Assembly: GCA_000320545.1 (NCBI GenBank)
Contig: ADNK01001110.1
Span: forward strand, 1 to 64,000
Direction of reading: 5' to 3'
DNA length: 64,000 bases
Origin: Bigelowiella natans CCMP2755
Lineage: Eukaryota > Protista > Cercozoa
Shown here: positions 6,602 through 63,881 of the stretch, piece after piece
Layout: every line of letters starts with the position of its first letter
How positions within the stretch are numbered: position 1 is the stretch's first letter
Notes under the pieces: model-generated
Told to the model about the DNA's origin: nothing
Seen by the model: only the letters and a program-made list of their open reading frames with translations
Databases searched by the model: none
Program-made: the position numbers and the translations under genes

Positions 6602-6898
6602 CTTGGCGTAGGGAGGGAGAAATCTACGCTTCCTCCTCTGTGCCTCACTCGGCTCTCACGAGCATTCGTACTTTCTTATCGAACCTCTCCTTGGCAACGG
6701 AAAATGATCCCTGGTATTTTCTCCAAATCCCTCGGTTCAGCGCTGTCGCGATGAAGAATCCTAGGAAGTTTATCGATCGCATTCACATCGTAACGGCGCA
6801 AAGGCGGTAAAATCTCAGAACTATTCAAATGTTCAAATGGATCTGGCTATTTCTCTCTTGCGACAACTAGGTTTCGAGAGATGTGCTACTTTTCTCTC

Positions 6899-6921
6899 TA
6901 GGGTTAGGGTTGGTTAGGGTT
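6899..6921 (+). repeat. Short interstitial TTAGGG-like (telobox-like) tract
   Basis: TAGGGTTAGGGTTGGTTAGGGTT about 300 bp upstream of the REJ gene ATG. Confidence 0.5.
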
Positions 6922-6980
6922 GAGTTTTCCTGAAGTCGAGACATGTGCTTGCATGAACCCCTAGCTTGCTAGCAGTCAGT

Positions 6981-7280
6981 CCTCACTGAAGCCAGTTCGA
7001 GGCACTGCATTTCGCACATTGCGAGTGTCTTGTCACACTTTGGAAGTGCAGTTTTTCATCATTGTTCTCATCGTTCTTGTGAACATGAACAAAGCATTGA
7101 TGCAAATCTGGACTCCACTCGCAGCTGTGCAAAATGGAAGTGCGGCAGTTGCAAGACAATGAAAGTGTGAAACGTGCAATGAACAATTGGCAATGAAATG
7201 AACAATGAACAATGATGATGAACCACGTTTCCAAAGTGTTGCAAGACATCAATGATGACAAACTGCATTTCCAAAATGTG
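6981..7280 (-). mobile_element. Degenerate interspersed repeat, likely a non-autonomous transposon end, related to 60790-61200
   Basis: 6981-7070 aligns to the reverse complement of about 61095-61200 (cctcactgaagccagttcgaggcactgc vs cctcactaaagttagttcgaggcactgc). 7200-7278 aligns directly to about 61050-61145. Confidence 0.65.
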
Positions 7281-8273
7281 GTCGATCAGCACAAGCAAAC
7301 TCTCTTTCTTTCTTTCTTTCTTTCTTTCCAGTTGATTGCTGGAGAGGACACGGATGGGTTGGTGTCCCATGATCCACTCAACCGCTCTGATGGAAGAACA
7401 CCTTTCTTCCACACTTGATTCTTTCAATTGGGGGAGTGCCAGAGTGCGTGGACGAGTCAGCGCGTCCTGTGACCCTTTTGAATGATTGAGCATTGAAAAC
7501 ACTTCGTTCATTCATCGTGTTGAGGGCCAAATTCTCATCAATGTTTCAATGTCTCATTCGTTCTTCTTTTTCTGCCCGTTCGCGCGGTTGGGCAAAAGGT
7601 GGACAAGAGTGGCGTGCTGGCTCGCTGGATTGTCCCGTGATCGTTTTCAACCGCTCTTTTGGAATCAATTCGTTGATTTGTTGAAGAAAATCAAGCGTCA
7701 ACACGGCTGTTTGCGCCCAGTTGATCAATCGCAACCATCACGTCATGCGTGTTGTGCATGCTTTCATCGGTAGTGCACGCAACCTTGCTAGCATGCAATT
7801 TTCAGATCATGCATGATTGCTAGATTGGTCGTCACTCATCACACTCTCGCGCACACATGCTCGGGCAGCCACGTGTGCTCCAATCTGGCAATGACATCGA
7901 TCACATTGCAACACGCACACGTGCATGCGTGTCTGTGCACCACACAAGTGCATGCTAGTGCTAGCCTGATTGCATGTTGCGGGTGTTCGGTGCTGTGCGT
8001 GATTGCATTGGGACATGTCTAGATGTGTCTGTGGCTAATCGTACGTGTCATGCCAATGCTGTGCGTGCGCAGGCAAGGTGACATGCCAACATGCGGATCA
8101 TTGGATTGGACACGCTACGCGATAGCGCAAGCTAGCAGGGACTGCAGACTGCGCTGTGCGGTACGTGTGGCATGAGCTTGCTTTCTCGAAGCGATCGCTT
8201 TGGATTTGAAAGAGTTTTGCAGAGCAATCAAAATCAGAATCATATAGCTTTGAAATCGCCACGGCTCAATAAT

Positions 8274-23535: not shown

Positions 23536-24176
23536 ACTACTGCTAGCTGCTAAATGTTATTCCTGTACCACCGTGCTAGCATGTTTTCAGCAGATATGCT
23601 ATATTCTATAAGTAAAGAAACCGTCGTATTGATACCGCTATGCTTCTTAACATGCATGCATGGTTATATTCCAGGGCTGCGAGATGCATGCATCGCGGAT
23701 GTCTAGACATGTGCCCACAAGCATGCGTGATGAATATTGTAGATTGTCTAGAATTCCAGCGGCGCTTTAATGATGGTAGCTTACCAATTGCTAGCGAGGT
23801 CACTACACGAATGGACTAGTGCACTGATGATGTGCCTGCTGCTCGGTTCTGCTATATGGTCTTGCAGCAGTTAACGAGACATGCATGTACATGGCTAGAT
23901 GTGTCATTAACAACGCTTAAGTAGACATGAAGGCTGCTCTAGCTAGCTAGGCGCTACAGACGCGCAGCAGTGTATGCTAGTATGCGCGATACATGCGAAA
24001 CTTCAATGATGATTACTACAAAGTTAAAGGTGGCATGCAAGCACGCTGCCCATACTGACACATAGGGCAGGATCCATCCCCAAGTGTCCACCCATTAGAA
24101 TAAATATGCTTTCTAGTCTACGTGTGCACGCGTCTGCCTTCACGCAATATTCCGAATAGGTGCGACATGATCACTA

Positions 24177-25163: not shown

Positions 25164-28100
25164 ATTCTTCTGCAGCCTGGCAAGGGCTTCCAGACGCTTC
25201 CTCTCTCGTTTAGAGAGCTTCTTCTGCTTGGCGCCCTTCTTGTTGTTGCGCCCGTTGCTGCTCGTGGTATGTGCAGCAGAGGGCTGCTGCTTCTCGCCGA
25301 GCTGCTGATTGTCCTTGGCGCCTACCGTTTCTCCGTTGATGGCGCTACCACCGGCATCACCACCATCATTACCCTTCCCTTCGCGCAAAGAGGAGGTGGG
25401 GACCATACTCAAGAATGCAGAGAAGGAGTCAGCAGCCAAGCCGAGCGTTTCCGTGTCGATCGCCCGGATCTCACTGGCGACTCGGCGGGGGAGCGGCGCG
25501 AGGAGAACCGTCGAGCTGGAGCGCTTGAAGTTGGAGCGCCTCACGTCTGCTGGGAACGGCACCCGTAAGAATAGGTGGCAAAGAACGAACATCAACCGCC
25601 GCGCGCTCCCGTCTGGATTGAGTTTAAACCTGGAAAGTAGCAGCGGTTAGCAGTAGCAGGAGGAGTAATAGTAGTGCTAGTACTACTACTGTTAGTAGTT
25701 GTTGTTGTAGTCACAGATTTTGGGTTAGTTTGTTGTTGATGATAAATGTTTGCTGTTGCTTCTTTCTTCCTCTTTTTCGTCTTCTCGTTATTGAGAAGAC
25801 CATACATTGATATCTAAACTCCCTTTCTCCCCCCCCCCCCCTCTCTCTTTCTCTCGCTTCGTTCTCCCCCCCCACCTTTTCGGCCCTCCACACACGCGTC
25901 GAAGCGTACCCGACCGCATCAGCGATACGAAGGCCATCGAGCTGCCAGCGCCGCCCGCAGCGTGGAGCGACGCCGCAACTCCTGCCAGCCCCACCGGCCG
26001 CGACTTCGGATCCGCGAGCCCCTGCCGCAATAACTGCTCTAGTGAGAAGCGGAAGGAGACGCGTGCCTGTTGCGACTTGATGTGTGCGCCCGGGAGCGAG
26101 AGGGGGGGGGTGAGGAGGATATTGGAGACCAGCTGCGTGGCCCTCTTGCGATCCCGCGCGTACGATTGGAAGAGTGCCATCCGGAGCGCGAGCGACGTGT
26201 CCGCCGCCGCGTATCGACCGCGCAGGGAGGTGAGAGGGGAGGTCATCAGCGACGCCACCTTCTGCATGGGGACGCCGAGGAAGGCGACGTAGCCCACGTC
26301 GTCGTGCCCCCTCCTTCCTGCACGGCCCGCCATCTGCCGGAAGGCCAAAGGGGTGAGCAGCGGCGAGTCGCCCAGGAACGCGCACGTGCGAGAAGGCATG
26401 TTCACGCCGACGGCGAGCGTCTTCGTGGCGATGACCACCTTAATGTGTTTCCCGCGAAACATCGTCTCCACCAGGTCCTTGTAGGAGCGGGGAAGCCCCT
26501 CGTGGTGCACGCCAACGCCGCGCCACAGCGCGCGGAGGAGCGGGTGATCGTTTGGCCACCCGGTAGCGTCGCGGAGGCGTTTCATCCAGAAGTCGAGGTC
26601 CTCGCGCGAGATTCGGTCGTTATCTGGGACGAAGGAGAAGCGCGGATCTACGTCCATCTGCAGGTCCAATTCGTCTTGATCGAGCATCGAAGCCGCGATC
26701 CGCGCGGCGTCCGCGCGCTGCTGCTCCGCCACGCGCGCGTCGTGGAGGCGAGCCTGCTGGTCGTGCGTGAGTTGCTTCTTCTGCTGGCCGCTGAGGGTCT
26801 TCTCCTTCTTGTTCCTCCGGCGATTTTGCATCTGCTTTACGAGCTTGGAGGCCTTGAGGGCCATCTTGGTCACGCGCCGCTTCTCCGCCTCGCCGCCTTC
26901 CCGCTCCGACGCGGCCTTCTCTAGACGCTCGAGGGTCTCCACGATCCGGAGCGCCAGCGCTTCGCACAGGTTGGGGTCCAAGCAGAAGGCCACGCAGGGC
27001 AGCTTGTCCTCGCGGGCCAGATCGACGAATAGCGGCAGCACATAGCGGCTGACGAAGTGCCTGGAAGCAATGCTTTCCTTACGCTCCGAGATTGCCCCAA
27101 GCCGGTCGCGTACGGGAGCTGCGAGCTGGTCGAGTACTAACTCGGCAGGGCCCCTCCCCTCCCCTCCTCCTCGTGTGTTCCCAGTGCCAGACATGAGCTT
27201 TTCAGCCCACACCCCAAACGCGGTCTTGATTTTCTCCCCATATTCGTGCGCCGCGTCTCTGCCTATGTACGCCTTCGCCCGGAAGTAAGCGGAGGGTTCC
27301 AGCGGCCTCAGCCCCTTGAGTGCTGCTACTTCGCTGCTGCCACTGCTGCTCGCTCCTCCGCTCGCAGACTGGCACATGTGGTCATACAGCACGATCGAGT
27401 CCCGAGGGGAAAACTCCATTGTCTTTGGGATGGCGATGGTGCTGCCGCTGTTGCTGCTGCTGGCCGTCTCTCCGTTCTCCTTGTCACCCGCCCCCCCTCC
27501 GTCCCTTCTCTCCGCAAAGTCGTGCGCCGCGCCGAAGGCCACCGCAGCGAGGGGGTGAAAGGGGAGGAGGCCGGATGGCAGCAGCTTCGGGGCACGCTTT
27601 CCGGCCTGCTTAAGCAGCATGCGCTCGGCGTTAGTCTTGGGGGATACGATGCCGTGCTTGTAGGAGAGCAGGAGGCGGTCGCGCTCGAAAGCTGGTAGGT
27701 ACACAGCCTTCTCGAGGTCGGCCCATCGCTTGGTGTGCACGATCAAGGCAACTTCAGGGTTGTCAGTCGGGAACGGCGAGGAGGAGGACGAAGAGGCCGA
27801 CTCCTCGCCTCCGTTATTGTCTCCCCTCCCCCCACGCCTCCCGCCTTTCCTGCCTCCGCCCTTCTTGCCTCTTTTGTTGGAGGGGGGGGTAGTGGAAGAG
27901 GACGAGCCGCCGTCCGCAGCGGCCCTCTCCTGGTCGAAGTTGGGAGTGCCGAGCTTAGCTGTTCGCTGTCGTGCTTGCTGAAGCCACGAGTGGAAAGCGT
28001 GCGGGTTTCCGACGGTAGCGGACAACGCCAGGAACGGAGCTGGGAAGGCCGCCAGAAGGCGCTCCCACGGCCCCCCGTCTTCCCCGTCGAGGCTATGAAC

Positions 28101-30065
28101 CTCGTCGTAAATCACATACTTCACGCGCGCCACCCACGGCTCCCGCTCTGGGGCGAGCATGATAGTTTCGAGGCACTGTGGCAAAGTCACGAGGACTTCG
28201 CACGTCTCCGTTTTGTAGGCGACCCCCGGCGTCAGCACGCCGAAGACAGCGCCGTACCGCCTGTACACGCTCGCTGCGACCTGTGAGACGAGCGCGGTTG
28301 TGGGGCACACATAGACGATGATCAAGGGTCCTGCGAGCAGCCCCGTTGTCGTAGGCTTGCTCTGCTTGTTGTGCGTGAGGATCTTCTTCATCGCATAGAA
28401 GGAAGCAAAGGTTTTCCCGCTCGACGTGGGCGCGACGATGAGCGCGGAGGCGCGGCGGTCCACGATATCGAGCATCTCCCGCTGCCACTTGTCCGGGTAA
28501 AACCCGCTCACACGCGGGTCGGGCGCGGATTGCACGTCACGCACCATCTTCGGCCCCGCATACGTCAGCTGGAATCGCTCTGGAGACAGAGGGATCCGGT
28601 GGGAGTCCACTGCGAGGTGCCTAAACCGCCGCTGCGCCTCGGACTTCTGCATGCGGGCTCGCTTCGCAAGGGCTTCACGTTCCTTCCGCGAGAGGCCCTT
28701 TCCTTTCTTTTGACCTTCATCATCATCATCATCATCGTCGTCGTCGTCGTCATCCTCGTCTTCGTCGGAGTCCTCCTCCTCTTCCTCCTCCCCCTCGGGC
28801 AGCCCCTCATTCCTCGGTCTCAGCACCTTTACACCGAGGGCCGTGAGCATGCGTAGAGCCTGCTCGAGGTACTCGTCACCGTCGCCCAGGGCGCCCTCTG
28901 GCGCTATTGGGAGAACTTTGGCCGCGGCCTGTTTCTTGGCGACGTCCTTCGCGTCGAGTTTGTGCAGGGCGATGTAATCCTGCAGCAGCCGCTTGGCTTG
29001 CTCGAGGAACCCTATTACGAGCAGCGCGTACAGCACACGGCCGAGCTGCGGCATCGTCAGCTCCGACTTGAACCGCCGGAACACGTCGAATGCCATCTGG
29101 AACACGCGCACCGCGCGCTCCATCTCGACGTCGCTCGGGGGAGAGCGAGCGGCCTTCGTCTTCGCCTCTTTCCCGTCCTCCTCCTTCTTCTCTTCAACGC
29201 CGTCCTCTTCCTCTTCTTCTTCTTCTTCTTCTTCTTCTTCTTCCTCATCATTATCAGCATCAGGGCTGGGTAACTTGAAGCTAGTACCGGGGTGCTGCTG
29301 CTCACACCACGCGAGGACACACCAGTCGAGCAGCACTAGCAGCCCGGGAATTACGTGGGGGTCGGAGATGTCAACCAGCCGCTCATCCAAACTGCTGATT
29401 CTCTTCTCAAGGGCAACAAGAGAGATCATACTGCCCTGCTGCTGCTTCTTCTTCTTTTCGCCGTCCTCTCCCTCCTCGCCTCCGTCAGCGTCCGGCCCCC
29501 CGAATGTCACTCCGAGCGCCTCGTCCTCCTTTCTGCGCTTCTCCTCCACGGTTTGTCTCAGTGCGAGAGGGATACGTCTCGCTGCTGCCACGTAGCTGGC
29601 TACGTTCTGCTTGATCTCCTCGCGCTTCCTGGCGTCCACGCCGGCGATGATTTGCTCGCGCATGGCCTTGCCAGAGGCCTTTTCACCGCCTCCGCCCCCG
29701 CCGCCCTTTCTGCCCTTCTTTTTCCCTTTCTTCCCGCCCGGATTCCATCCTCCCTTGTTCTTCTTCTTGCCACTCGATCCCTGCCATTTGGCTCCTCCCC
29801 CCCCCTTGGCTTCGTCTTCGTTGCTGCCGCTGTCGCCGTTGGACGATTTGGCCACGATGACGTCGCGGAGAACGAGGCGTGTGCCACTGAGAGATTGCGC
29901 GTATTTTGTCATGAACAGGAGGTACTTCTGCCGCTCCTGCTCCACTAGCATCTTCGCCTCACGGGAGGAGGGGGAGGACAATGAAGTCCCGGAAACAACT
30001 ATCCCTTGGCTGCCGCCTCCCAGCTTATCATTACGCTGCAGACGATAAAGGATACGAACACGCAT

Positions 30066-30113
<48 letters not shown>

Positions 30114-33100
30114 GGGAAAATACATCAATTATCATCCCCACCCTTTGATTCAGCTTTGCCACATTCTTTTAAAATACAGGTCTAAATTGTGCGTGTTTGA
30201 TCATGAAAAGCACCTCGCCGTTTTTGCCGCTTTTGGCGACGTCCAATCTGGCTAGGCCCCTGCCTTGTCTTGCGCGCTCTTTCCTCTCCAGCAGCTGTTT
30301 ACGCCGCTTTTGAGCCATGGCTGCCTCTTCAGCCTCGACGAGCTCCTCTCCACCCTCCTTGAGGGGGTCCGGAGGCATCCAGTAGAGCTCCTTTGCCTCC
30401 TCCTCACTCTTCTTTTTCTTCTTCTCTCCCACCCCCTTTGCACTGGTTGATCGGCGAGGCGCGACGAAACGGGAAAGCGCCTTCTTCTCAGAATCGGCGA
30501 GGATGTAATCCACAATCGCTGCTTCCTCTACCGGTTGCAACGGGGGAGCGGGGATTGGGTCCTCTTCTTTTGCGACAAGCTTGCCATTCCTTGCTTTTTG
30601 AAGCGTGGCGAGGGATTGCGAGAAAAGGACAGCAGCGGCGGAGGGGGCGGAGCCCTCTTTCCCGGCAGGAAATACAGGGCTGCTCACTTCAAGTGGAAAG
30701 AAGCTTTCGGAGAGCGACACCTCCCCTCCCCCCCCCTGCTGCTGTGAATCTTTCTCATTGCCCTTAGTATTCTGGATAAGCGTCCGAAACACCTTCCATA
30801 ATGACGAGAGGGACGCTGACATAGAATCGGGGAGACCTGATAATACATGGTGACAAATCCTCACCAAAATCGTCATCATCATCATCATCATCACCATCAT
30901 CCTCATCACCCTCATCATCCTCATCATCATCCTCATCATCCTCACAAATCGCACGCTACTCTGCGGACCCACCGATATCAGCTGCGGAGGCGATCGCGCT
31001 GCCGTCGTTATTTTCGCTGCTCACTCCAGCAGCAAGGACGAGAGCGAGCGTCCGATGGAACAGTGCGCCGTCCACGACGTGCAGGAAAGCCTCTGTTACC
31101 GTTGCAGTCGATTTCTCGTCACTGCCCGCAGTCATGGCCACCAGGTGCGCTGCGTACAGCTCCAAGAACACACGGGGACTTTCCAACGACGCTGATGGCG
31201 ACGAGGAGGAGGGGGGCGACGACGACTCTCTCACCGGAGCAGCCAGGGGCTTGAACAGCCCCCCCCCCTTTGGGACAGGCAGCCGACGAATGCGATCCTG
31301 AAGAGTCAGGTGGCGTGCGAGGACGACGCTAAGCAGTAGCGTCTTGGCCATCATTTCTTGGTCTATCCTCGCATCGACTACGGCAAGCGCTGCTTCCGAG
31401 GCCGCCTTCCAAACCAGAAGGTCGACTCCGCGGCGTGCTGCGCGCTCTGCTGCAGCTTGAACGTCAGCGCAATCGGCTCCTCCTCCTCCTCCTCCTCCTC
31501 CTCCTCCTCCATCCTCTTTCTTCCCCTCCGTGTCGCCTGCGCCTGTTGTCGCAGTATCATCGCCTTTCTCGTCGCCTGATGCAATGATGACGGCAAGATG
31601 GTGGTGATGATGGTGATGATGATGATGATGATGATGGTGAATGATGCAGCAGCCGAGCACAATGGCCATCACTACGGTCGATCATAGATAACGACGGGCA
31701 TGATGCAAAACCACTAATACACCACTACCTCTAGTTGCAAGACAACATATGAGGTGTGCATCACCACATAATCCGTACATGCGAGAGAAACGAATAATGG
31801 GGAATTAATTAGCCAGCACGCAGCAGAGCACGACACAACCTTTTTCCTCGATTTCGTCTGCAGCGGCCTCCCAATCATCTAGCTCATCATCGTCGCCTCC
31901 ATCACCACCATTCTGCTCCTCGTTCTGCTCCTCGTTTCCCTCTCTCTCCTCTCCCTCCTCTTCTTCTGAAAAGTCTTCCCAGTTCTCCAGTTCATCACCG
32001 TTGATATCATCGTCGTGGCCCTGGTCCCAGCCTCCTTCGTCGATGTTAGCATCACCCTTCTCCTCTTCCGCACCTCCTAATCCCATTGCACGGCGGTGTG
32101 CTTCCTCCTCTGCTTCCTCGTCGACGATTTGTGCTTCCCCCTCTTCTTCACCACCCTCGGTCTCGCCACCCTGCCTCTTGCCATCATCCTTGTGTGGGTG
32201 TGGGTGTGAGTGTGTGTAAGAGAGTGTGAGTGTGCGTGTTTGTGTGTGTAAATTATTCGATTGTGAATGTCAGCATTGAGCCTCCCTCATCTCGATTCGG
32301 GAGAGATAGTCGGGCATATAGCTGCTCTACTTTACTCTACCTGCCCCTGGGCGGTCTTTGTAGCGTCTCTCCCCTCGCCCACAAGGCCCCTTCCATCCCA
32401 CTCGTCTGCATGGAGTATTGCTCGTTAGCATTGGTGATGCATGAAGGATTTGATGATGCTAATGCTCAATCGATGGTAATGACAATAATGGCGACAACAA
32501 CGACAACCACGACGATGGTGGTAGTGATTGTTATGAGGACGATATACAGGTCGGATAAGGCTGCAAAGTCCCACCTTGATCAGAGTCATCATCAGCATCT
32601 TTGAACAATGCTGCTGAGCGATCCTGCGACGCGAGCACGCTCGACCACATCTCTTCGGCCTCACTTTCGGCCTGTTGGATAGTGATGAAGGATGGCGATC
32701 ATAATCATCAGACCCGTCGTAGTTGCCAGTGTCACAATCATCATCATCATCATCATCATCATCCATATCCTTGTCGCTCACCTTTGCTAGCAAGTGGTGT
32801 TGAATTGCATTCTCTTCTGCACTCCCCTCTCCCCCCTGTCTTGCGTAGTGGCGATGATGCAGAAGTGCCTTCCAGTATGCTGCTAGTCCTACCACCGCTA
32901 CGACGAAACTCTGTTCATGAAAGAAAAAGAACGAGTGAGAATCCAGCTTCGAGTGAGTAGGATATCGATGTCATCCACCTTGGGTGCCCCCTCGTTCCCA
33001 AGACCCTTTTGTGCGTCTTCGATCATCCAGCCATGAGGCAGTGCCTGCGGCTTTTTTACTTCCCCATCTCGAGTTTTCAGATTGTTTAGAATCCCAGCGT

Positions 33101-38093: not shown

Positions 38094-39090
38094 GAGTGTG
38101 CGAGTGGCAAGTGAGCACCGTCATTCAGCGTGATTTATAACGATGCGGTGCGGAGGTATTGTGCTATTTAAGAGTCTGATCTTCGCTCTTATCCTTTCTT
38201 GTCTGCCCCGCACACAGGCCTTGTTAGCAAAGCCAGGTGTGGGATAATCTGCTGTGAGTGCTGCTACTCTTGATACAAACAAAGTATAATATGCACAGCG
38301 CTGAGCCGAGATCGTAGTTGCTCTTACGTCATCTCGGATGGATGATAGATGGAGAATACTACGATTTGATGCACAAATATCTAACTTCATTCGCCTAAAA
38401 GTCTAATAACGATTTGTATGAATAAGTTACATATCCTTTCCCTACCACACGTTTCTCCATTAGTTCTGTTATTGCATATTAATTCACGACGACAACTGCT
38501 TGTGATAAAATCTTGCATGCACAGCAGGCGCAAATCTAGTTTGTTCTGTTGCGAATGCAAATGAATAACGAGCCATCATCAGCACATTGAAGTCAAGTGT
38601 GATCAGCGCCGCACAATATTGCCCGCCTGCGCTACTGTTGCTTCTATTATTGCTGCTGATCATGGAATAGAATTTGAATGGACCAACTCTTAAAGATAGC
38701 GATAACAAGAACAGTTTGTAATAGTTCTGTGAAAGGCGTTGCGCCTAGCAGACGATGAGCGTGCTTGCAGCTATACTTAATTACAAGCAAATACTGCAAT
38801 AACTAGACAAGCTCTCGTTTTGTCAGTAGCCCAACTAGCCAACTTACCGTCATAATAGGTCTTACATTCCATCATGCAGTCTATACGAAGGCTAGAAGGT
38901 GATGAATGCTGTCAAGGTATAACACCAACATGTAGCTATAACATTGTACGGCTCATATCGTATGAGTACAGGACCGTCTTGAAGCAGTCGTAGAATTACA
39001 GCAGCAGAGACCAGCAGAGACCAGCAGGAAAGCGACGATATCGGCGTTCCATGAATCTCTAGAATACTACCGTCGACTTTCGGTCGATTA

Positions 39091-41233: not shown

Positions 41234-41559
41234 TGTTGCGCGTAAGGTGTTCACAGGCCGAGGCGCTACGTGCACAAGTAGGCAGGGGGGGGGAAAGGCA
41301 CGTTTGCTTCCTTTTGAAGAGTTGTGTTTATTTTTATTAAAGATTATATTTTTATTAAATCGTGCACTGCGTAATCATTCGCGAAGCTTTCGCGAATGCC
41401 GCCGCACGTGGGGCAGCACACTTCCGGTGTGCTGCCATGAGTCCCGCCGGAACCCACGTGCCTATGCTGTATTAATATCTACGTTATCTATATTCTATAT
41501 CCGCGACAACCCCTTTGTTGTCGCACGTGACTTGTGCCCGCGTAGTGGTACGCGCTACA
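41234..41559 (-). repeat. 3' LTR (326 bp)
   Basis: TGTTGCGCGTA...TACGCGCTACA (11-bp terminal inverted repeat, 1 mismatch); identical to 46624-46949. Confidence 0.97.
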
Positions 41560-41567
41560 CCTCCCCC
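41560..41567 (-). other. Polypurine tract GGGGGAGG
   Basis: Immediately precedes the 3' LTR on the minus strand. Confidence 0.85.
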
Positions 41568-41610
41568 AAGTCACGTTGCTCCTTCCTTCCTTCCTTATTC
41601 CCTTAGACCT

Positions 41611-44600
41611 TCATCGCTTTCGGAACTTCACCAACCACCAGGTAATAGATTCCTCTCTAACCTTATCTCCTTTGTCGCTTACCCAGAACTCACCTTCGTC
41701 CTTAGGTTCGTGTCCATACCAGCCCTCTGCATCAAGGTCCCCCAGGACCTTATACCAGTGCTCAAAGGGTAAGTCGGGAACAGCTAGGTAGAGTAGCTGA
41801 TATTTTCCGTCCTTTATTTTCATAGCTACCCTCTCCATATTTCGTAATCCAGGGTAGCCTAGATAGACAATCTTCATGCGCCAATCGTCGTTCACCCTGA
41901 CCTTATTGTTTCCATATTCCACATCGAACTTAGGTCGGGGTCCTAAACAAGGCATTGCTCGCTCCCACACAGTAGGGTTTACTTTAACATCCTCTAGGAG
42001 CTTCTCACCGATATCATAATTCTTTAGGTGACTGATGTGGCGCAAGGTGACCCTGTTCCCATCATAGATGTAGTACTGCTTCCTCCCCTTCCTCTCGGTA
42101 ACCTTTGCAACGCCACCCCAGAAGGGGTCTTGTTTATTTCTCGATCTCAGATTTACCTTGGCCCTAACATACTGTCCTTCCTTTAGAACTCGGCCATCGT
42201 ACGGGACCTTCTCGTCTTCGCTCTCGGTATCGTCGTCGTTGTCGTCGCCTTCTTCCCTCTCCTTATCCTTGATACCTCCCCCAGACGTGAAGGTGTCGTT
42301 TACTAACCCTTGTATCTTGTCTGGTGTGGTGCTATTTATCCTGCTTAGGTTGGCCAAGGTGCGGTGGAGTCGCTCTACCTTGGAGTTGGACTGGGCATAG
42401 TATACAGGTGAGGCATCAATATTAGGGTGTGGTAGCTGTAGAAGAGAGGTCTCATTATCCACATGTAACTTCTTTGGTATCTTGTTTATGCTAACTTCAT
42501 CAGGGATAGCCTGGAGCTCAGACTCCCAGGTACGGTAGCAGTTAGTAAGCCTCTGCTTATATAAGCCTTTGTTCTTCTTAGCAACGTTGACCTTGATAAT
42601 CTTTTTAACCCAGCACTTTCCAGTGGCCACATCAACGAAGGTAAGGTAGTGATAGCCATCGTACTTATAAACATCAATTTGCACGATATCTAAGAAGTTC
42701 CTTGCTTTGATTTTCTTAGATGCACGGCTCTTGCTGGACTCCTTGGTGGCGACGCCTGCCGCCTTCAAGCTGGAGCACCTGCAGCCACGCAGGTATGTCC
42801 TTATCTCTTTTAGCTTGTAGGGCCAGTAGTAATGGTAGAGTAGAGCAGTGATATGGTTTTCTCCTACGTGTGCAGGTCCATGGGCGGTAAAGAGAAGGGC
42901 TCCCCTGGTCCGCCGTGGCACGTAGGTACGCCTAACATTATTAGTGTATACATATATCCTATCACTAAGTACCTCATGCTTGTGTTTGTATTTATCCAGG
43001 TGTTCTTGAAGGTGCTGGAGCTCCTCTGGCTCAGGCAGGAAGTCGCCGTCCTCGAAGGTAATCGCGTTAACCATAGGGGTGACCTGGGTAGGGACTTTCT
43101 TTTCGAACAGCCTGCTGAAATAGTCAGCAAGCTGCTTGTCTCCTGGTGCGTAGACCACTGTCCTCTTGTCCCTAAACTCTTCCGTGTCCGCCCTCATAGC
43201 TGCATACTCATCGTTAGGCGCTTCGAGCTTGCGGTCGATGCCTAGGAGGGGCTTGTGGTCAGTCATTAAGGTGAAGCTGGGCACCGACAGCAGGTAGTAT
43301 CTTAGTTTCCTCTGCGCCTCAGTCATGGCTTTATACTCTCCTTTTGTAGGGCTGTACTTGGCCTCAGCTGCTGTGCAGGCCCTGCCCCACACCCGTATGA
43401 TCTGCTGGTCTTGGGTAAGTACAGCAGCCATACCTAGCTTAGACCAGTCTGTCCATAGGGTAGCTGGTCTAGTAGTGTCTAGCTTAGCATTCAATAGGGT
43501 GTTGCTGCATAACTTTATTAGGTTATCGAAGTGGGCATCAAGGCCAGCCTTGGCCCACACCTTAGCGAAGCTGAGGCCTACAGAGTTCTCCTTCCGGTAA
43601 GCAGTAGTAAAAGCAGCTGCAGTCCTAGCGTAGGTAGGGGAGAACCTACGTAGTATCCAAGCTGCAGTCTGCAAGAATGACTTTAACTCCTTTGCATTCT
43701 TAGGTTTAGGGGCTTGCTGTAGTGCTGCTACTTTCTCGGGGTTTGGGGTGATGCGGCCTTGCTCCAGGTAATATCCACACCACTTGATTCTTGTAGCTAG
43801 GAATGTACACTTCTGCAGTCTAATAGTAAAACCGAAGTGTGCAAACCTAATAAATATATTTTCCAGGAGGAAGATCTGAGCGACGACTGTGTTGGTACAT
43901 ATTATGTCATCATCCACATACACAAACACAAACACCCACAACACAGACGCCATCCCATCATGTGTGTATGCCCTGTAGTTCTGACTACTGAACGCATCCC
44001 CTGATATGCTTAGGCCGTAAGGGAATACGACGAAGTGCCACTTCCTGTGCCTGCTGGAGAACGCGGTAATGGGGCGGGAGGTTTTGTGGATGGGTGTCTG
44101 CATGTATGATTCATTTTTATCTAGGGAAGAGTAGTATTTGTATCCTATGACGTGTTCAATAACGTCATCTATCCTTGGTGTAGGTGTCTGGATCCTCTTT
44201 ATTACTCGGTTGTGGCGGATGAAGTTGTGCGCCAGGCGGAAGAAAGGGTAAGTAGGTTTCTTAGCTAGCACATGTCTCACGTTCCATGGTGAGTTGCTTG
44301 GCTCTATCTTCCCTTCCTTTGCCCATTCATTGATCTGCCACTCTATCTTTTCCCAGTCCGCTTCCGGTCGCCTATGTTCTGGGTCATTGATGATGCACTC
44401 TTCGTATCCCTTCTTTAGCTCGATCTTTACTGGGGTAAGCTTGCTGGAGGGCTTCGTCGTCGGCTTGGTGATGTCAGAGTACTTCTCGTTTAATATTTTA
44501 TTAATGTACTTTTTGCCTTTGTCGATATCCCAATCATCAGCTGGGGGGGTCTTGTCCAGTAGCTCCGTTATCTGTCGGATGGTCTTGCCGGGGTTCTTCT

Positions 44601-46584
44601 TCCGTAGCTCGGTAGGTGTAGGTAGCTTGTTGTCCGCTAGGTCCATAAACTCTAACGCATTAACGCTTGACTCAGAGGTCCACTCGTCAAGCCGTATCAT
44701 GTTCTGGCTGATGGTCCTGCCTGACTTCTTTGGCAACTTAGCAAAGTATATCTTGTGATTGTAGAATGATATGATCCCCCCTAATTTTTCTAGGGCATCC
44801 TGTCCGAGGAGTAGTTCCATGGATAAAGTCATGGCTACTCGGGTCTTGATTTGGGTCTCCGCGTCGCTGCCAGGTATCTGTAGCTTTAGCATTAGCTCAC
44901 CGACGGTCTTCATGGAAGAGCTTCCGTCTGCTTGAGCATATTTACGTTCTTTCTTAGTCACTTGATCCAATAGTCCTAACCTTCTTACTGTGCTTAGGCT
45001 TATGAAGGACTTCGGCATGCTGCCACTATCCCAAAGGGCAGGTAGTTTCTTGTAGTCTCCGTAGCTGTCTTTAACTTTAACCTTGGTCATAGCAACTTTG
45101 ATAGTCCTGTTAGCGTCTTCGTCATTAATGTTGCATACTCCTAAGTTCTTTATGTCGTCTAGGGTCATGGGCTTGTCTTGGTCCTGCGTTGCTGGTACTG
45201 CTGTCTTCGTCGGCGCCTGCTTAAGGTGATCTAATATTCCGTTTATCTGCTGCTGTATAGCATTGATACTGTTCTGCTTTTTGTTCTTATATTTATTGTT
45301 CTTCCCGTTGTTGCTGCCTTGCCATTTGCTGTTGTTATATCCTTGTCCTCTGCCTTTCTTTCTCTTTAACTTCTCGTAGTGTTCGTTGAGCTGCCTGATC
45401 GTCATCCTGGGTCGTCCTTCTTTCCTGTCTCTGCAGTCTTTAGCGGTGTGTTTCCCTTTACGTGAGCAGTATCCGCAACGTCGGTTACCTTCCCTGTCCT
45501 TGTACCAGTCTCGCTGCGGCTTAATAGCGTTAATGTTTCCTATGCCAGGTACCTTAGGGCTGGTAAACTTGCGGTCCTGCTCCTGCTCGCGTAGGGATAT
45601 AGCCTGCACTGCTGCCTCCATCGTGGTGTAGCCTTTCTCCGTAACGTAAGTGGATTCCTTTATCTTTAACTTGAACTCTTCAAACCTTGCCTGATCATCA
45701 CCTGTGTTGTAATTAAAATCATGTAGTTCGTCGATCATATCCTGGAAGCGCGTGGCAAAGTCTCTAACAGGTTCTCTCTCATGCTGCATCATTGCTCTGT
45801 ATTTTCTAATAGCCTGGGGTAGGGAGTTAGCATCCTGTTCATTTACAAAAGCCTTCATTATCGCCTCAACGTCTCGTAGCCCACTAACTGTAGTGTGTAT
45901 TTTCTCTAGCTGCCTGATCCGGGTCCTGCCTGTCTCGTAAAGGTCCATGGCTTGCTTTATTATAGCTAGCCATTTGAGCTTGTCGTTTTCGGTGGGGTTA
46001 GGGGTAAAGTCGCAGAGTATACTCCTAGCGTTCTTCCACCACCTCCTTGCCTCACCTCTTTTCCCGTTGTATTTCGTTATCATAACCGGTGCTGTTTTAA
46101 CAGACATGAACTGGGTGTTCCGCTGTACCGGCTGCTGCTGCTTGACGGTGCTCTGGGTCGTCCCCCGCGAGGCGCCCAGACCCCCGTCGTTCCTAAACAA
46201 AGCTGCCCACTCTGGAGGTAAGTCTGCTTCGTAATCCATGATGTCCTGCATGATAGCTGCCCAAACATCATGTGTCTGATACTTGTATTCTATCGATACT
46301 TTCAGTTTGGCGTAGTTGCTCGCCCTGGGTCGCAAGGCTCGTAATGCCATTACGACCTTCTTGCTTTCGGCGGCCACGTCCTCGTCGTCCGCCTCGTAGA
46401 AGTTCTCCAGTGCCTCTGCTGCTGCATCTGCTTTCTTAATCCCGGGTGCTGGTCCCGGCGGTGCCTGTGGAGGTGTTCCTCCTCCTTCCTTAGCGTCCGT
46501 ATCGCCCTTCCTTTCCTGTTTCTGCTCGTGCCCTTGCACGGCCTGCGAGCCAAAGTCCTGCTGTTCTTCTAGCTGCTGTGACAT
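41611..46584 (-). CDS. Gag-Pol polyprotein, 1657 aa (Gag, protease, RT, RNase H, integrase, C-terminal MTase-like domain)
   Basis: Zn knuckle CGYCSRKGKHTAKDC; protease ALWDSGS; RT LDKNESYMQ, FPYGL, YVDD; RNase H TDWS, TDHKPL, ADYFSR; integrase H..H..YYWP..C.C, QIDV, VDNE, SNSKVER. Confidence 0.97.
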   Translation of the reverse strand: MSQQLEEQQDFGSQAVQGHEQKQERKGDTDAKEGGGTPPQAPPGPAPGIKKADAAAEALENFYEADDEDVAAESKKVVMALRALRPRASNYAKLKVSIEYKYQTHDVWAAIMQDIMDYEADLPPEWAALFRNDGGLGASRGTTQSTVKQQQPVQRNTQFMSVKTAPVMITKYNGKRGEARRWWKNARSILCDFTPNPTENDKLKWLAIIKQAMDLYETGRTRIRQLEKIHTTVSGLRDVEAIMKAFVNEQDANSLPQAIRKYRAMMQHEREPVRDFATRFQDMIDELHDFNYNTGDDQARFEEFKLKIKESTYVTEKGYTTMEAAVQAISLREQEQDRKFTSPKVPGIGNINAIKPQRDWYKDREGNRRCGYCSRKGKHTAKDCRDRKEGRPRMTIRQLNEHYEKLKRKKGRGQGYNNSKWQGSNNGKNNKYKNKKQNSINAIQQQINGILDHLKQAPTKTAVPATQDQDKPMTLDDIKNLGVCNINDEDANRTIKVAMTKVKVKDSYGDYKKLPALWDSGSMPKSFISLSTVRRLGLLDQVTKKERKYAQADGSSSMKTVGELMLKLQIPGSDAETQIKTRVAMTLSMELLLGQDALEKLGGIISFYNHKIYFAKLPKKSGRTISQNMIRLDEWTSESSVNALEFMDLADNKLPTPTELRKKNPGKTIRQITELLDKTPPADDWDIDKGKKYINKILNEKYSDITKPTTKPSSKLTPVKIELKKGYEECIINDPEHRRPEADWEKIEWQINEWAKEGKIEPSNSPWNVRHVLAKKPTYPFFRLAHNFIRHNRVIKRIQTPTPRIDDVIEHVIGYKYYSSLDKNESYMQTPIHKTSRPITAFSSRHRKWHFVVFPYGLSISGDAFSSQNYRAYTHDGMASVLWVFVFVYVDDDIICTNTVVAQIFLLENIFIRFAHFGFTIRLQKCTFLATRIKWCGYYLEQGRITPNPEKVAALQQAPKPKNAKELKSFLQTAAWILRRFSPTYARTAAAFTTAYRKENSVGLSFAKVWAKAGLDAHFDNLIKLCSNTLLNAKLDTTRPATLWTDWSKLGMAAVLTQDQQIIRVWGRACTAAEAKYSPTKGEYKAMTEAQRKLRYYLLSVPSFTLMTDHKPLLGIDRKLEAPNDEYAAMRADTEEFRDKRTVVYAPGDKQLADYFSRLFEKKVPTQVTPMVNAITFEDGDFLPEPEELQHLQEHLDKYKHKHEVLSDRIYVYTNNVRRTYVPRRTRGALLFTAHGPAHVGENHITALLYHYYWPYKLKEIRTYLRGCRCSSLKAAGVATKESSKSRASKKIKARNFLDIVQIDVYKYDGYHYLTFVDVATGKCWVKKIIKVNVAKKNKGLYKQRLTNCYRTWESELQAIPDEVSINKIPKKLHVDNETSLLQLPHPNIDASPVYYAQSNSKVERLHRTLANLSRINSTTPDKIQGLVNDTFTSGGGIKDKEREEGDDNDDDTESEDEKVPYDGRVLKEGQYVRAKVNLRSRNKQDPFWGGVAKVTERKGRKQYYIYDGNRVTLRHISHLKNYDIGEKLLEDVKVNPTVWERAMPCLGPRPKFDVEYGNNKVRVNDDWRMKIVYLGYPGLRNMERVAMKIKDGKYQLLYLAVPDLPFEHWYKVLGDLDAEGWYGHEPKDEGEFWVSDKGDKVREESITWWLVKFRKR

Positions 46585-46600
46585 TGTTAGTCAAATCGTT

Positions 46601-46618
46601 TCCCGTGTGTGGAAGCCA
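46601..46618 (-). other. Primer-binding site TGGCTTCCACACACGGGA (18 nt)
   Basis: Starts 5 nt after the 5' LTR. Its complement ends ..TCCCGTGTGTGGAAG-CCA like a tRNA 3' end (possibly Glu/Asp type; not verified). Confidence 0.8.
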
Positions 46619-46623
46619 AAGGT

Positions 46624-46949
46624 TGTTGCGCGTAAGGTGTTCACAGGCCGAGGCGCTACGTGCACAAGTAGGCAGGGGGGGGGAAAGGCACGTTTGCTTC
46701 CTTTTGAAGAGTTGTGTTTATTTTTATTAAAGATTATATTTTTATTAAATCGTGCACTGCGTAATCATTCGCGAAGCTTTCGCGAATGCCGCCGCACGTG
46801 GGGCAGCACACTTCCGGTGTGCTGCCATGAGTCCCGCCGGAACCCACGTGCCTATGCTGTATTAATATCTACGTTATCTATATTCTATATCCGCGACAAC
46901 CCCTTTGTTGTCGCACGTGACTTGTGCCCGCGTAGTGGTACGCGCTACA
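46624..46949 (-). repeat. 5' LTR (326 bp)
   Basis: Identical to 41234-41559; followed on the minus strand by the PBS and the ORF start. Confidence 0.97.
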
Positions 46950-54512: not shown

Positions 54513-55507
54513 CAAGCAAGGAAGATTGATCTTCTAAATCAGCATGGCAGTTTGAGATGTAAAGCGAGGTTGCATGCACCGTGAAGCCCACACCTTGTTT
54601 GATTGCATCGCATGTTTGGACTGATGAGGAGGTGACGCAGCTCGTTTTTGCCTCAGCAACCCTTTTCCGGTGACACACACACTGACACAGCACAGTGCTC
54701 TAGCGCTGCTCACAACACACATGCAAGTGTCATTTCAACCAACCATGCCAGCATGCCATTCTCAATGAACGCAAACAACATGACGAATGTGTTGCTCACC
54801 TGTCATGAACAAACAAGCGTCAACCCACAACACGTGCCGTGCATTCATGCAAGCCACGCTGCAATGCCACGGCGGGAACTGGCACGGTCTAGGGGTGGGT
54901 GTGTCCCGCACGCATTGTATGCAAAAATGAACATTGCCACAGATGTTGCTCTTTGCGATCACATCCTGATGAAAATGCAGACTGTCGGATTGCGTCATTG
55001 CCACCGACGCAAACGAACTGATTAGCTGCAGCTACGCGCAGGCGAGCCCACATTGTCAGCACGGCAGCATCAGAGCCCGGATGTGCATGTGCAGGTCGTC
55101 AGCGACTGCGTTGTCGTGTGCTGAGTGCGAGCTAGCTGGCTAGCTGGGACACCGTGGTTGGTGCGTCCCAATCTGAACAATGAGCTAGTGAGACTCGCTG
55201 CAAAGTCTGGAAGTTGCAAGCAAGTTGCATGGTTTTCGATTGACCATTCACCTGCAGCAGGAATGACGATCCATCATGTGTGGATGAGCTGATGAACTTG
55301 CAGGTCCAGAGGTGTCCATCAGAGCACAACGGCTTGAAAAGCATGCATCCCGCCAGACGGGTTGGTTTCAAGCACGCACCACACTGCAAGCGTCAAATCG
55401 AGGCACACACACGTGTGAGCTGCTCAGAGCAGCGGCTGATTGGGGTGCAGTTCAAACAACAAAGTCTGAGCAAGCGTCACTCACTTTGATGAGGAAGATC
55501 GATTGAT

Positions 55508-56002
55508 TGTTGCGCGTAAGGTGTTCACAGGCCGAGGCGCTACGTGCACAAGTAGGCAGGGGGGGGGAAAGGCACGTTTGCTTCCTTTTGAAGAGTTGTG
55601 TTTATTTTTATTAAAGATTATATTTTTATTAAATCGTGCACTGCGTAATCATTCGCGAAGCTTTCGCGAATGCCGCCGCACGTGGGGCAGCACACTTCCG
55701 GTGTGCTGCCATGAGTCCCGCCGGAACCCACGTGCCTATGCTGTATTAATATCTACGTTATCTATATTCTATATCCGCGACAACCCCTTTGTTGTCGCAC
55801 GTGACTTGTGCCCGCGTAGTGGTACGCGCTACACCTCCCCCAAGTGATTCGTTTTGCGTCCACCTCGACGTCCAACGCAACGCGATGCACGATGCACACT
55901 TGAGTTGCTAGCAAGCTGGACGCATCTCTAACCTTATCTCCTTTGTCGCTTACCCAGAACTCACCTTCGTCCTTAGGTTCGTGTCCATACCAGCCCTCTG
56001 CA
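55508..56002 (-). mobile_element. Third LTR copy (55508-55833) + PPT stub + 79-bp unrelated DNA + 78-bp pol 3' fragment
   Basis: 55508-55845 matches 41234-41571; 55925-56002 matches 41654-41731. Confidence 0.92.
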
Positions 56003-59600: not shown

Positions 59601-60789
59601 TGAACATTTTTATCGGGTGGAGTCAGCTGGTAATCGACAGCAGCATAGGTAAGGAGTACGTCTCAGACGAATGCATCGGAGCAAATTTGTGAATACTTTG
59701 GATTATATCGTATTGTGCTGCCTTAAGCTGTTTTGAATATCAGTTTAGTCCATCAGCATGATGACGAGAATTCCTCTAATATCGAGATTAGTATTGAGAT
59801 GAAGGCACCGCAAATTTCAGTTTCTAATCAAGTTGGGTGCTCCAGTGATCTGTATATGCGGCTTGCAATACAATTACTACATATACATCTGCTAGAAAAA
59901 TGTATTTCTTGCGAATTTCAACAAGGCGCAATTTGATACTTTCGTTACAGCGGCGTCAAGTTAGTAATGCACTAGATTGCAAGCCGGAGCTCTGCGAAAG
60001 TTTGCCTTCCAGCTTCAACAATGATTTGTTTTCGCCGTGATGAACATGTGAAACGCGCCCTGCTAGAGCTGCAGCACACTTCTAGACTAGACAGCGCATT
60101 TTGTCAATGCGATCATTTTGTGTGCAGATGCCAAGCATGCATGCTAGCCAGCATGGGCATGCAGGTGGCTAGTGCAGTGCACTACCTGGCGAACGCTGCA
60201 TTCGCGCCAGTTACGTGTTTGCTTGCGATTTGGAAGAAAGCTGGAAAAAGTCCATCCTCGTGCAGCGACTTCACTGCTAATATGATAGACATGCAATACA
60301 CAATATATAATATATATATATATATAATATATATAGTGTATTGCTGTGTCTATTATTAATTGAGCAGTGATGAACCTTTGATTGATGTCATGACGCAGCT
60401 AGCTGCGCATTCGCATGGCGGCATGTGTTCACACCGCCCATCTGCCATCGCAATCGTCCACAAAGAGCAGTGCGATGCAGGATGCAGCATCATGCCATCT
60501 TCATCTTCAACCAATGATGGGTCAAAATGTGACTGTGCCATGGCCATGCTGGCATGGGAAGCTTGTACATGTGCATCGCAACATCCACGTCGATCTGCAC
60601 GGCCGTGCTGGCGTGTTGCCACCGCTGGACCGCATTGCGAAAGCGCATTGACGCCGTGTTGAAAGCCGCATTGTTGGCGCATTGATCAACACGGCAATTT
60701 TCAAAACGCGGCCGTCAACACGTTGGAGCGCATTGGCGATCTTGCAGATCTGAGCTCAATGATCATCAATGACCCCCTGAATTTCCCCC

Positions 60790-61209
60790 ACATTTTTCAA
60801 TGACAATGAACACAACAAGTGACAACTAGCTTGACAATGACAAGACCACATTTCTAAAGTGCGTTTCTAGGTTGCAAGACATTGAACATTGAACATTGAA
60901 AGAAGCATCAATGCAAACTGCATGCTGGCAGGAGCAAGAACCACATGGGAGACATGCACAAACACGTGCCAGCGCCTCATCAAAAATCATTGCGAGGACT
61001 TGTCAGCACCCTGAGAACAATGCCAGAATCACAATGAGAACAACGAGAACAATGAACAATGTGCAATGAACAATGATGATGAACCACATTTCAATGAGAA
61101 CAATGATGACAAACTAGCAAACTGCATTCTAGCATTTCCAAAATGCAACAAGACATTTGCAGTGCACGAAACGCAGTGCCTCGAACTAACTTTAGTGAGG
61201 TCTAACTAG
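60790..61209 (+). mobile_element. Degenerate interspersed repeat related to 6981-7280, with AACAATG subrepeats
   Basis: Reciprocal alignment with 6981-7280; ends in an imperfect hairpin CCTC..ACTAA/TTAGT-GAGG followed by CTAG|T. Confidence 0.6.
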
Positions 61210-61529
61210 TGAAACTGTGACCAGAAGGAATCAAGAGTGGCATTCTGGCCATTCCTCCATTCCTAGATTCATTTTCTTTCGTGCCTTTTCTTTGCCAACC
61301 CTGTTGGTGTGACGTTTGCAGTTCCAACCTGCATCTTGGATGTAGCGACAAAATCGTTGAGCGGTTGCGAGAAACATTAGAAGAAATACAGGGCATTTTT
61401 GGAAAAATTCGTATCGGAATAAATAGGGAAGAAGAATCGGGCATGCACAAAATCCATCGTCGGACACTCCTTTTTTTTACTCATACCCCGAGATACCTAC
61501 CATCCCTTCGAGCAAGGGAAAAACTGCAA

Positions 61530-61863
61530 CAGCTGGGAAGATGAAAGACGGAGAAGCCAAGGCAAAAGCACTTCTGGATTCTGGAAAGATATCGCAATCG
61601 ATCTACAAGCACATGGTATCTTCCATCCGTGAGGAAAAAGAAAGATCAGCTGGGAAGATGAAAGACGGAGAAGCCAAGGCAAAAGCACTTCTGGATTCTG
61701 GAAAGATATCGCAATCGATCTACAAGCACATGGTATCTTCCATCCGTGAGGAAAAAGAAAGATCAGCTGGAAAGATGAAAGACGGAGAAGCCGAGGCAAA
61801 AGCACTTCTGGATTCTGGAAAGATATCGCAATCGATCTACAAGCACATGGTATCTTCCATCCG
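61530..61863 (+). repeat. About 2.85 copies of a near-identical 117-bp (39-aa) coding repeat
   Basis: Units start at 61530, 61647 and 61764. Confidence 0.95.
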
Positions 61864-63070
61864 CATGCCACAGCAAATAGTGCAGCAGCAGCCTCAAGGT
61901 GGTGATGTCGCCGTGCAAAAAGGCGCTGCCCCTTCCCCACAGGAACTCGAAGAACGAATTGGAGAACAGTTGTACCCTATGATCGAGCAGTATGAGCCTG
62001 AAAAAGCAGGAAAAATCACCGGTATGCTTCTTATGATGGACAATCAGGAACTTCTTCACCTTATGGAAGACCAAAATAGTCTGGTTGCTAAAATCAATGA
62101 AGCACTTGCCGTTCTCAACGAATTTCCTGAAGGAAAGACGTCGCAAAAATTACGCACACAACATTTAACAAGGTCGACACAAAAGAGTGACGAGAATGAG
62201 AGGGCAGAGGCTGCCTTCCGCCACGCGCTCGATGAAATCTGTCCAGAAAACTTCCACATAATTCTAGAGAAGGTGGTGTCAGGGACGGAGGAGGACCTGA
62301 ATATCGATAATAAGGTCAAGCTGGACATGGCTGCTAAACTCACCTTCGAAAAGGCCATTGCAAAATCGGTGTTCTGCAAAACCTACGCCGAATTTTGCTG
62401 GAACCTCTTCGACAAATTAGGCAAATTCCATCCTGAGTCTGGTAAGAAATGGGATAAAACGCAAAACAACACCGGTGTCAAACCGTACGATTTCCGCAGG
62501 CCAATATTAGCACGGTGCCAGAAGGAATTTGAAGCATACACATACACCAAGAAGGAAAATGCCGACTCAGAAGATGATAAGGATAAAAAAAGGAAGAGGT
62601 TCCTGGGTACTATCAGGTTGATTGGAGAATTGTATATCAAGGGAATGATTGCTAATAACATTATCATCAGTTGCTGCCATGTCCTTATTGACGGAGGAGG
62701 TAAACCTAAACCTGACTTTATCCAAGCTCTGTGCAAGCTCTTAGAAACCGTAGGCAAGAAAATGGAAGCGAAACTGCTTGCCTCGCTAAACAACATCTTC
62801 GAGATACTTAAAAAGCTCACTCAGGATCCTGCACTTGATTTCCGTCATCGGCTCATGATTCAAGACACAATAGATCTGCGGAAAAACAAGTGGATCCCTC
62901 GCTTTAAAGAGGAGAAGGCCATGACGAAGAAGAAGTTTAAAAAGATAGGGGCACGGGAAGGGCAGAAGGCTAGGAATCGCGCTATTAAGTTGAATCACAA
63001 AGCAAAGGTGTTTGTCCTCAGATCTAAAAGGTTAGCTTTCATCGGCAAGCCAAATCATTTTCCATTCTAA
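61541..63070 (+). CDS. MLLE(PABC)-MIF4G fusion protein with N-terminal repeats and a C-terminal PAM2-like motif
   Basis: MLLE: [35 protein letters not shown]. eIF4G-type MIF4G: [73 protein letters not shown]. An upstream exon is possible. Confidence 0.85.
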
Positions 63071-63881
63071 CTCGTCGGATGGAAATGGCTTCTAGCCTTT
63101 GTGGCTCTAAGCGTGTATTCCACGCTTGTATAGCCTTTGTGGCTCCAAGATGGCATTTAAGAATTGCGGACGTAGATGTCCCTTCCTCCGTCGTTCAGCT
63201 TGTAACGGATTTTGTGCACAATTGATTTTGACGCTTCCACAATCTCCACGGGGTTGCCCTTCACACCCGAGAGTGAAAATGACCACAGCCTTCTGTCGTC
63301 CAAACTGTGATGACATCCATGCATTCTCACAACGCGAGTCAGCTAGTCAGGCTAGCGTCATTGATGTCCACAACCCCATTTTTCAAATCCCACGCTAATT
63401 GGTTTCACTGTCTGAGCTGTTGGTGTGTGCTTGCGTCGCGCCAGACCATCTGAGACACGTGCCATGCTAGCATGCCTAGATGCTCTGTGCACTGTGCGCA
63501 TATGTGGTCTAGATGCGCAAAACAAATGTGCGACACCTGTCTAGCTGTGCACCTCTAGACCTTGAAACTTGAAACACGCGGCAGCGGAGACAAACAGACA
63601 CAGCATGAGCGCTGTGGCCGCTGCTTTGCACAGCCACATCAGGATGACCACTGAAAACATTCAATCACTTCATGCTCGGCTCACATGCCGTCTCACCACA
63701 TTGCAATGACGTCACGTTGCGCTGTGGTTCAGTGGCGCTGTGCTAGCGATACATTGTGTGATGTGCCAAAGCGGCTAGTCACGTTGTTCCAATCTAGCGA
63801 TAGATGCATGGCGTGTCTAGCTGTTCTCGGTAGTGTTGCACCAAACAGCTGCTGATCGTCACACATGCAAGCTGGACATGG

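Follow-up and report, generated by a model that had tools for sequence, protein, structure and literature searches.

Excision of the Tc1/mariner transposons Sleeping Beauty and ZB leaves footprints of 2-4 bp (PMC7913693). In such a footprint a target duplication flanks a few terminal bases of the element after staggered excision, an arrangement that resembles the units considered here, in which a 4-bp sequence is doubled around the tetramer CTAG in the genome of the alga Bigelowiella natans. However, the Tc1/mariner duplication is always TA and its footprints vary, whereas in B. natans a variable 4-mer is duplicated around a self-complementary core that hardly varies, and there are tens of thousands of scars with no element found. 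Elements of the PIF/Harbinger-ISL2EU group (DDE_Tnp_4) make a 2-3 bp duplication of the TA/TWA type, and hAT elements make an 8-bp duplication and leave footprints derived from flank palindromes; the 4-bp duplication sets the units apart from both, and their fixed core from hAT as well. The tetramer CTAG itself is found at the 3' ends of Helitrons, which make no duplication, and is the target of IS5-type elements, which duplicate CTAG itself. In the units, by contrast, CTAG is the inserted part and is missing from the empty site.

A duplication of 4 bp, as in the units, is made by Sola and Ginger DNA transposons (PMC10741241). The ends of Sola elements are very variable, and the described targets of Sola2 are AT-rich (AWWT; PMC3627910), which by description sets them apart from the C/A-W-W-G/T targets of the units. 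Ginger and LTR integrases act on TG...CA termini, whereas the remnant in the units is CTA(G). De novo duplications attributed to topoisomerase II arise at hotspots by end filling of a 4-nt stagger, giving a 4-bp duplication (bioRxiv 10.1101/2020.05.03.075358). The stagger, the duplication length and the hotspots are common to both, but the topoisomerase product has no inserted core, and core-less duplications are not enriched here. We found no published description of CTAG + 4-bp units in the literature searched, which lay mostly outside subscription papers and Repbase. New here are a family-wide empty-site test, a genome-wide count, a series of variant cores, and tests against telomerase, a Gypsy integrase and the TpA mutator of this species.

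Empty sites in a dispersed repeat family

We read a stretch of 64,000 nt (contig C2627, hereafter the window), 28 repeat-family loci and a 200-kb part of contig C3234. Together these sequences come to 351 kb, or 0.4% of the 91.4-Mb genome of 3736 contigs. The sequence-only reading of the window had noticed that positions 61107-61145 contain two separate 8-bp additions that are missing from a paralog at 7256-7278. Both additions proved to be as described, with cores 15 bp apart (Table 1). An inverted paralog was correctly said to lack both inserts; its coordinates, given as about 7039-7060, are 7036-7058 on the minus strand, and its target 4-mers differ from those of the occupied site.

Table 1. 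Units, empty sites and islands in the window
Feature	Position	Strand	Description
Unit 1	61110-61121		CAAA doubled around CTAG, core 61114-61117; missing from paralogs
Unit 2	61125-61136		CATT doubled around CTAG, core 61129-61132; missing from paralogs
Empty paralogous site	7256-7278	+	Identical except for the two 8-bp additions
Inverted paralog	7036-7058	-	Empty too; target 4-mers AAAA, CACT
Host repeat copy	60850-61290	+	Dispersed, TpA-depleted, unclassified, non-coding family harbouring units
Unit-like match	61259-61270		CTAG fixed in the family, not private; chance or ancient
Decayed unit	60921-60932		CTGG core; duplication with one mismatch; the 8 bp are missing from paralogs
Three decayed units	60545-60632		CTGG cores at 60549, 60608, 60625
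Long-core variant	60140-60155		CATG doubled around an 8-nt core (CTAG + decayed CCAG)
Overlapping units	63463-63483		Units on CATG and on ATGC with cores 9 bp apart; the same in four Illumina runs
Island	63339-63562		Five perfect units, cores 63343, 63467, 63476, 63541, 63555; downstream of the 61541-63070 ORF
Island	7816-8026		Perfect units with cores 7820 and 8019; one decayed (7885)
Two units	23939-23984		Cores 23943, 23977; TA-normal spacer
Two units	38831-38899		Cores 38835, 38892; just beyond the 3' end of the TGT gene; TA-normal
TpA-depleted island	54744-55313		Two perfect units (55140, 55185) and several decayed

Read depth puts the repeat family that includes the occupied site at roughly 500 copies. 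Both inserts were missing from each of the 16 other copies printed for the retrieved loci. When the genome was searched with a pattern for the site, 230 exact matches were obtained; among the 100 listed, 94 had the short form, none had either insert, and the remaining six had other small insertions. Private units with empty paralogs were present elsewhere in the family, at L009:1720, L016:1497, L011:1230 and position 60925 of the window, as the sequence-only reading had predicted for insertions. Since none of the 100 listed family copies carries the inserts, the CTAG units are insertions, as had been proposed from the sequence, and not ancestral sequence deleted elsewhere.

The host family is modular, with copies at 60850-61290 and 6974-7290; it contains 7-bp tandem motifs and in places lies directly upstream of genes. 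No coding origin was found for it, and its low-TA frames gave no Pfam transposon domain. A possible Helitron-like end at 61259-61270 was rejected because the repeat runs on past that CTAG.

Illumina contigs reproduced positions 62903-63875, with their five units, without difference in four runs; this segment leaves the 61107 site outside, which sits in a high-copy stretch and is spanned by no Illumina piece among those listed. The units are therefore no assembly artefact, as five of them were independently reproduced. No polymorphism of units was seen across the four runs, which look like one strain. The same segment includes the overlapping pair at 63463-63483, whose CATG and ATGC targets are those named in the sequence-only reading. 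Bordering this island is a second high-copy short repeat (63603-63747, depth about 500 times single copy), and the ORF at 61541-63070 encodes a 39-residue triple repeat, an MLLE domain and a MIF4G domain and has several paralogs by read depth.

Abundance, target preference and islands

An exact 4-bp flanking repeat was found around 20 of 185 CTAG tetramers in the window and around 200 of 1082 (18.5%) in the 351 kb, where nine other palindromic 4-mers used as control had one in 0.5-1.6% of cases. Only a duplication length of 4 was enriched: 174 cases were observed in islands against 2.1 expected, compared with 3 against 5.8 for length 3 and 3 against 0.7 for length 5. The form with target CATG, the commonest target 4-mer, occurred 3828 times genome-wide, against 7 for the reversed control. 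Extrapolation from density and from the CATG share agreed on about 36,000 intact units, to which decayed ones would add more. So many copies of one 8-bp insertion amount to a genome-wide mutational signature, and the CTAG + 4-bp units are real, genome-wide and insertional.

Core-less 4-bp duplications were not in excess (ratio 1.16 in islands against 1.22 outside); an apparent excess vanished once phases were collapsed. One-ended cores (C, CT, CTA) were not enriched either. Matches to the CATG pattern in a virus database were unrelated, being two or three copies of one palindrome with no other CTAG units: 16 contigs (L057-L072) carry the same 12-bp palindrome 2-3 times at distances of 11-21 bp, probably as operator sites. 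No perfect CTAG unit was present in contigs of a freshwater relative, two other metagenome contigs and short transcripts from further chlorarachniophytes, a sample too short or distant to show absence. One compact, apparently intron-free and scar-free contig of the freshwater relative has a DDX60-like helicase gene adjoining that of a HECT ligase (L054:2784-12628). A similar large helicase is encoded at 25788-30128 of the window, and the closest non-identical relatives of the window's HECT ligase are in Norrisiella (65%) and Lotharella (58%).

The empty sites reconstructed for 123 isolated units had a symmetric preference, R-S / C or A, W, W, G or T / S-Y. C (0.48) and A (0.35) prevailed at the first target base, and G (0.03) was almost excluded. 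These values are from symmetrised duplicated 4-mers; without symmetrising, the classes C..G, A..G, C..T and A..T together held 85 of the 123.

The units are concentrated in intergenic islands of 0.3-0.9 kb. On contig C3234, 80 of 85 lie inside 17 islands that make up 6% of the sequence, and the long ORFs, which account for 39% of the window, contain none of its 20 units. Introns, which occupy about 28 Mb by a table in a mutation-accumulation study (bioRxiv 10.64898/2026.01.13.699255), are spared too, so neutrality alone would leave the island pattern unexplained. Eight of the 17 islands are between convergent genes and one is between divergent genes, a lean to convergent or downstream spacers (8/17 against 25%, p ~0.04) that, coming from a crude strand classifier, lends weak support to placement at gene ends.

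Neighbouring cores were in excess at 8-10 bp, and nested units could be peeled back layer by layer. Local hotspots had been proposed from the overlapping pair. Repeated events at one spot are indeed real, whereas very local clustering may partly follow target preference, and on the larger scale the clustering is into the intergenic islands.

Variant cores and a proposed excision footprint model

Longer cores were found at low frequency between the same 4-bp duplications, namely CTATAG, CTAGTAG, CTAGCTAG and CTA-filler-TAG, and the set was replicated at three targets. Target CATG gave 518 variant-core rows against 23 in the control; a hand count among about 62 listed loci found 7 CTATAG, 6 CTAGTAG and 10 CTAGCTAG, besides TpA-decayed and filler forms. 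Target ATGT gave 65 rows against 2, with 21 CTAGCTAG, 6 CTAGTAG and 5 CTATAG, and most of the remainder consisted of CTA or CTAG, a few filler bases, and then TAG or CTAG. The same cores were seen at target CAAG (10 rows against 2). By chance, less than one locus each would be expected for CTATAG, CTAGTAG and CTAGCTAG, and each main variant accounts for roughly 1-2% of the CATG total. No fifth base was consistently kept in the variant cores.

The variant cores thus form a 3+3, 4+3, 4+4 and filler series, which is what end-to-end joining of two CTA/CTAG ends would give. This suggests that both ends of the break carried CTA or CTAG and normally annealed via the palindrome; the scar would be a near-invariant CTAG because such self-complementary ends anneal. 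The CTAGCTAG core could instead have arisen by later duplication.

We consider it fairly probable that the units are excision footprints of a cut-and-paste DNA transposon with a 4-bp target duplication and CTA(G) ends. A presumably dimeric enzyme would cut the two strands 4 nt apart, the stagger recorded in the duplications, at a loosely palindromic target that lies mostly in the intergenic zones of 0.3-0.9 kb, and 4 bp would be duplicated. On excision of an element with CTA or CTAG at both ends, the non-transferred strand would, as in Tc1/mariner, be nicked 3-4 nt inside, so that each chromosome end would keep a CTA or CTAG 3' overhang. In the large majority of cases the self-complementary overhangs would anneal and be sealed to one CTAG, and rarely they would be joined end to end or with a few filler bases, the products described above. 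Sites would then be hit again and become nested, as their distribution indicates, and some cores would decay to CCAG or CTGG in TpA-mutated islands. Over roughly 10^8 generations, transposition of a few elements could have produced scars in the tens of thousands without the elements becoming common.

The empty paralogs, private positions, fixed 4-bp duplication, symmetric target bias, variant series, nesting and lack of a core-less excess support the footprint model. Three features of footprints as a class are seen in the units: a fixed-length duplication around a short remnant, a symmetric target preference and minor end-joining variants. In the 351 kb that hold 200 scars, a search for an intact element with CT...AG inverted ends and a 4-bp duplication gave nothing above control. 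Searching for a short MITE between two copies of CATG returned only clusters of units, and no recurring terminus followed target + CTAG + G/T among 100 genome matches.

DNA transposase matches were few in a genome profile search (15 DDE_Tnp_4, 3 hAT and 2 DDE_1), with none to six other families. For Tc1/mariner, DDE_3 gave no match and DDE_1 the two just counted, and the duplication is a variable 4-mer, not TA. Profiles PF13843, PF13358, PF01609, PF25273, PF24764, PF10551 and PF20700, four of them used without a positive control, gave no match; PF25273, one of these four, was a guess at the Sola transposase. We know of no superfamily that combines CTA(G) termini with a variable 4-bp duplication. 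Nine short integrase-domain frames of 335-411 aa, on contigs C1612, C175, C631, C1475, C200, C796, C3609, C1997 and C2835, are unlike the long retroelement frames and are candidates for virophage-type integrases or a Ginger/IS3-like DNA transposon.

If the units are footprints, they record a cleavage geometry (a 4-nt target stagger and 3-4 nt of kept, self-complementary ends) along with the target sites, in the tens of thousands, used by a transposase unlike any superfamily tested. They would also show that intergenic DNA can be remodelled by an element that excises and leaves almost no copies behind.

Other possible origins and the TpA mutator

An unlikely alternative is a cut-and-tag activity of the host with no mobile passenger, in which an enzyme would make 4-nt staggered breaks in gene-end zones, the ends would gain CTA or CTAG, and then anneal. 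The enzyme might be a domesticated transposase or integrase, a hairpin-forming nuclease, or an activity that pairs topoisomerase II-type breaks with a dedicated end-modifying step. Such a system, at similarly long odds, would amount to programmed insertional mutagenesis, with about 36,000 intact marks made so far. It would account for the lack of a source element beside some 36,000 scars and for the strong preference for certain zones (80 of the 85 units on C3234 within 6% of its sequence, with the lean to convergent or downstream spacers), and the variant series fits any route that places CTA(G) on both ends. However, to our knowledge no enzyme adds a fixed CTAG. Topoisomerase II breaks do yield 4-bp duplications by end filling (bioRxiv 10.1101/2020.05.03.075358), but by that route core-less duplications would be expected, and they are not in excess. 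If no element exists, the units would represent a new kind of insertional mutator. Under the footprint model and the host activity alike, the scars date events relative to TpA hypermutation in B. natans and predict the termini to seek.

Slippage, template switching, selection for a palindrome resembling a terminator, an ancestral long form and an assembly artefact are together very improbable. Alignment at a single site is ambiguous by 1-2 nt and the units do cluster near gene ends, as these explanations would allow; however, empty sites hold no CTAG to serve as a template, a single fixed core goes with many different duplicated 4-mers, no listed family copy has the inserts, and five units were reproduced exactly in the four Illumina runs.

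B. natans has a published defence that acts by TpA-to-CpA/TpG hypermutation (bioRxiv 10.64898/2026.01.13.699255), and in that study a hypermutated viral region had 211 substitutions and no indel, and none of 21 indels in the mutation-accumulation lines was a CTAG unit. Its main text does not mention CTAG. The defence acts in the same species and on some of the same islands, where it yields CCAG/CTGG cores; it differs in making substitutions only. Cores of CCAG or CTGG had the same target bias as CTAG units and had empty paralogs, and they were more frequent in TpA-depleted islands (14/39) than elsewhere (4/75; p 5e-5). These cores are decay products of the published TpA mutator.

That the units themselves are part of, or are caused by, this defence is hardly credible. 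Half of the window's units do sit in TpA-depleted patches, but on C3234 TpA is normal in most islands, where the cores are all CTAG, and the mutator accounts for decayed cores only. Since most islands are TpA-normal and the hypermutated viral region gained no indel in the published study, scarring and TpA mutation are separate. A mixture fit gave about 4% divergence per site, which at published rates makes the scars close to 10^8 generations old on average. If units arose steadily, about one new unit would be expected in the published 3132 generations, and for this reason the lack of a unit among the 21 indels says nothing on present activity. Of the de novo insertions that Table S2 lists for the mutation-accumulation lines, about half have ACA at their end or are rich in CA/TG. 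The fillers of variant scar cores are similar, and the pattern may be a signature of the alga's end-joining polymerase.

Equally hard to credit, and largely refuted, is a telomerase-type healing in which TCTAGGG, which we take to be the nucleomorph telomere repeat, would be added to both ends of a staggered break and annealed at CTAG. This repeat occurs in papers on chlorarachniophyte telomeres and the window has one telomere-like run at 6897-6921; yet CTAG followed by GG is depleted in islands (4/548), no GG or CTAGGG extension follows among the printed variant cores, and the base before CTAG is more often G than T, out of register with TCTAGGG. The run at 6897-6921 is short and degenerate, mixes TCTAGGG with TTAGGG, and is inside a repeat island.

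Least probable of all is that the units are by-products of a Gypsy retrotransposon that is young and abundant (41234-46949), duplicates 4 bp on insertion as well (GTCC at the window copy), sits in the same islands and has at least 238 LTR ends genome-wide, with CTAG in 9 of 100 listed flanks against about 1.5% expected, but whose first target base (T 40, A 24, G 24, C 12 by hand tally of the 100 listed flanks) differs from that of the units (C 48, A 35, T 15, G 3; chi-square p ~1e-22), whose LTRs end in TG...CA, and which as a retroelement does not excise. The target-base test refutes this origin for this Gypsy family, which seems to insert in the zones that hold the scars but to prefer other bases. 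The window copy is an intact Gypsy-type element with identical 326-bp LTRs. A truncated copy of the same element, with an identical LTR and a diverged internal start, adjoins a scar island at 55508-56002.
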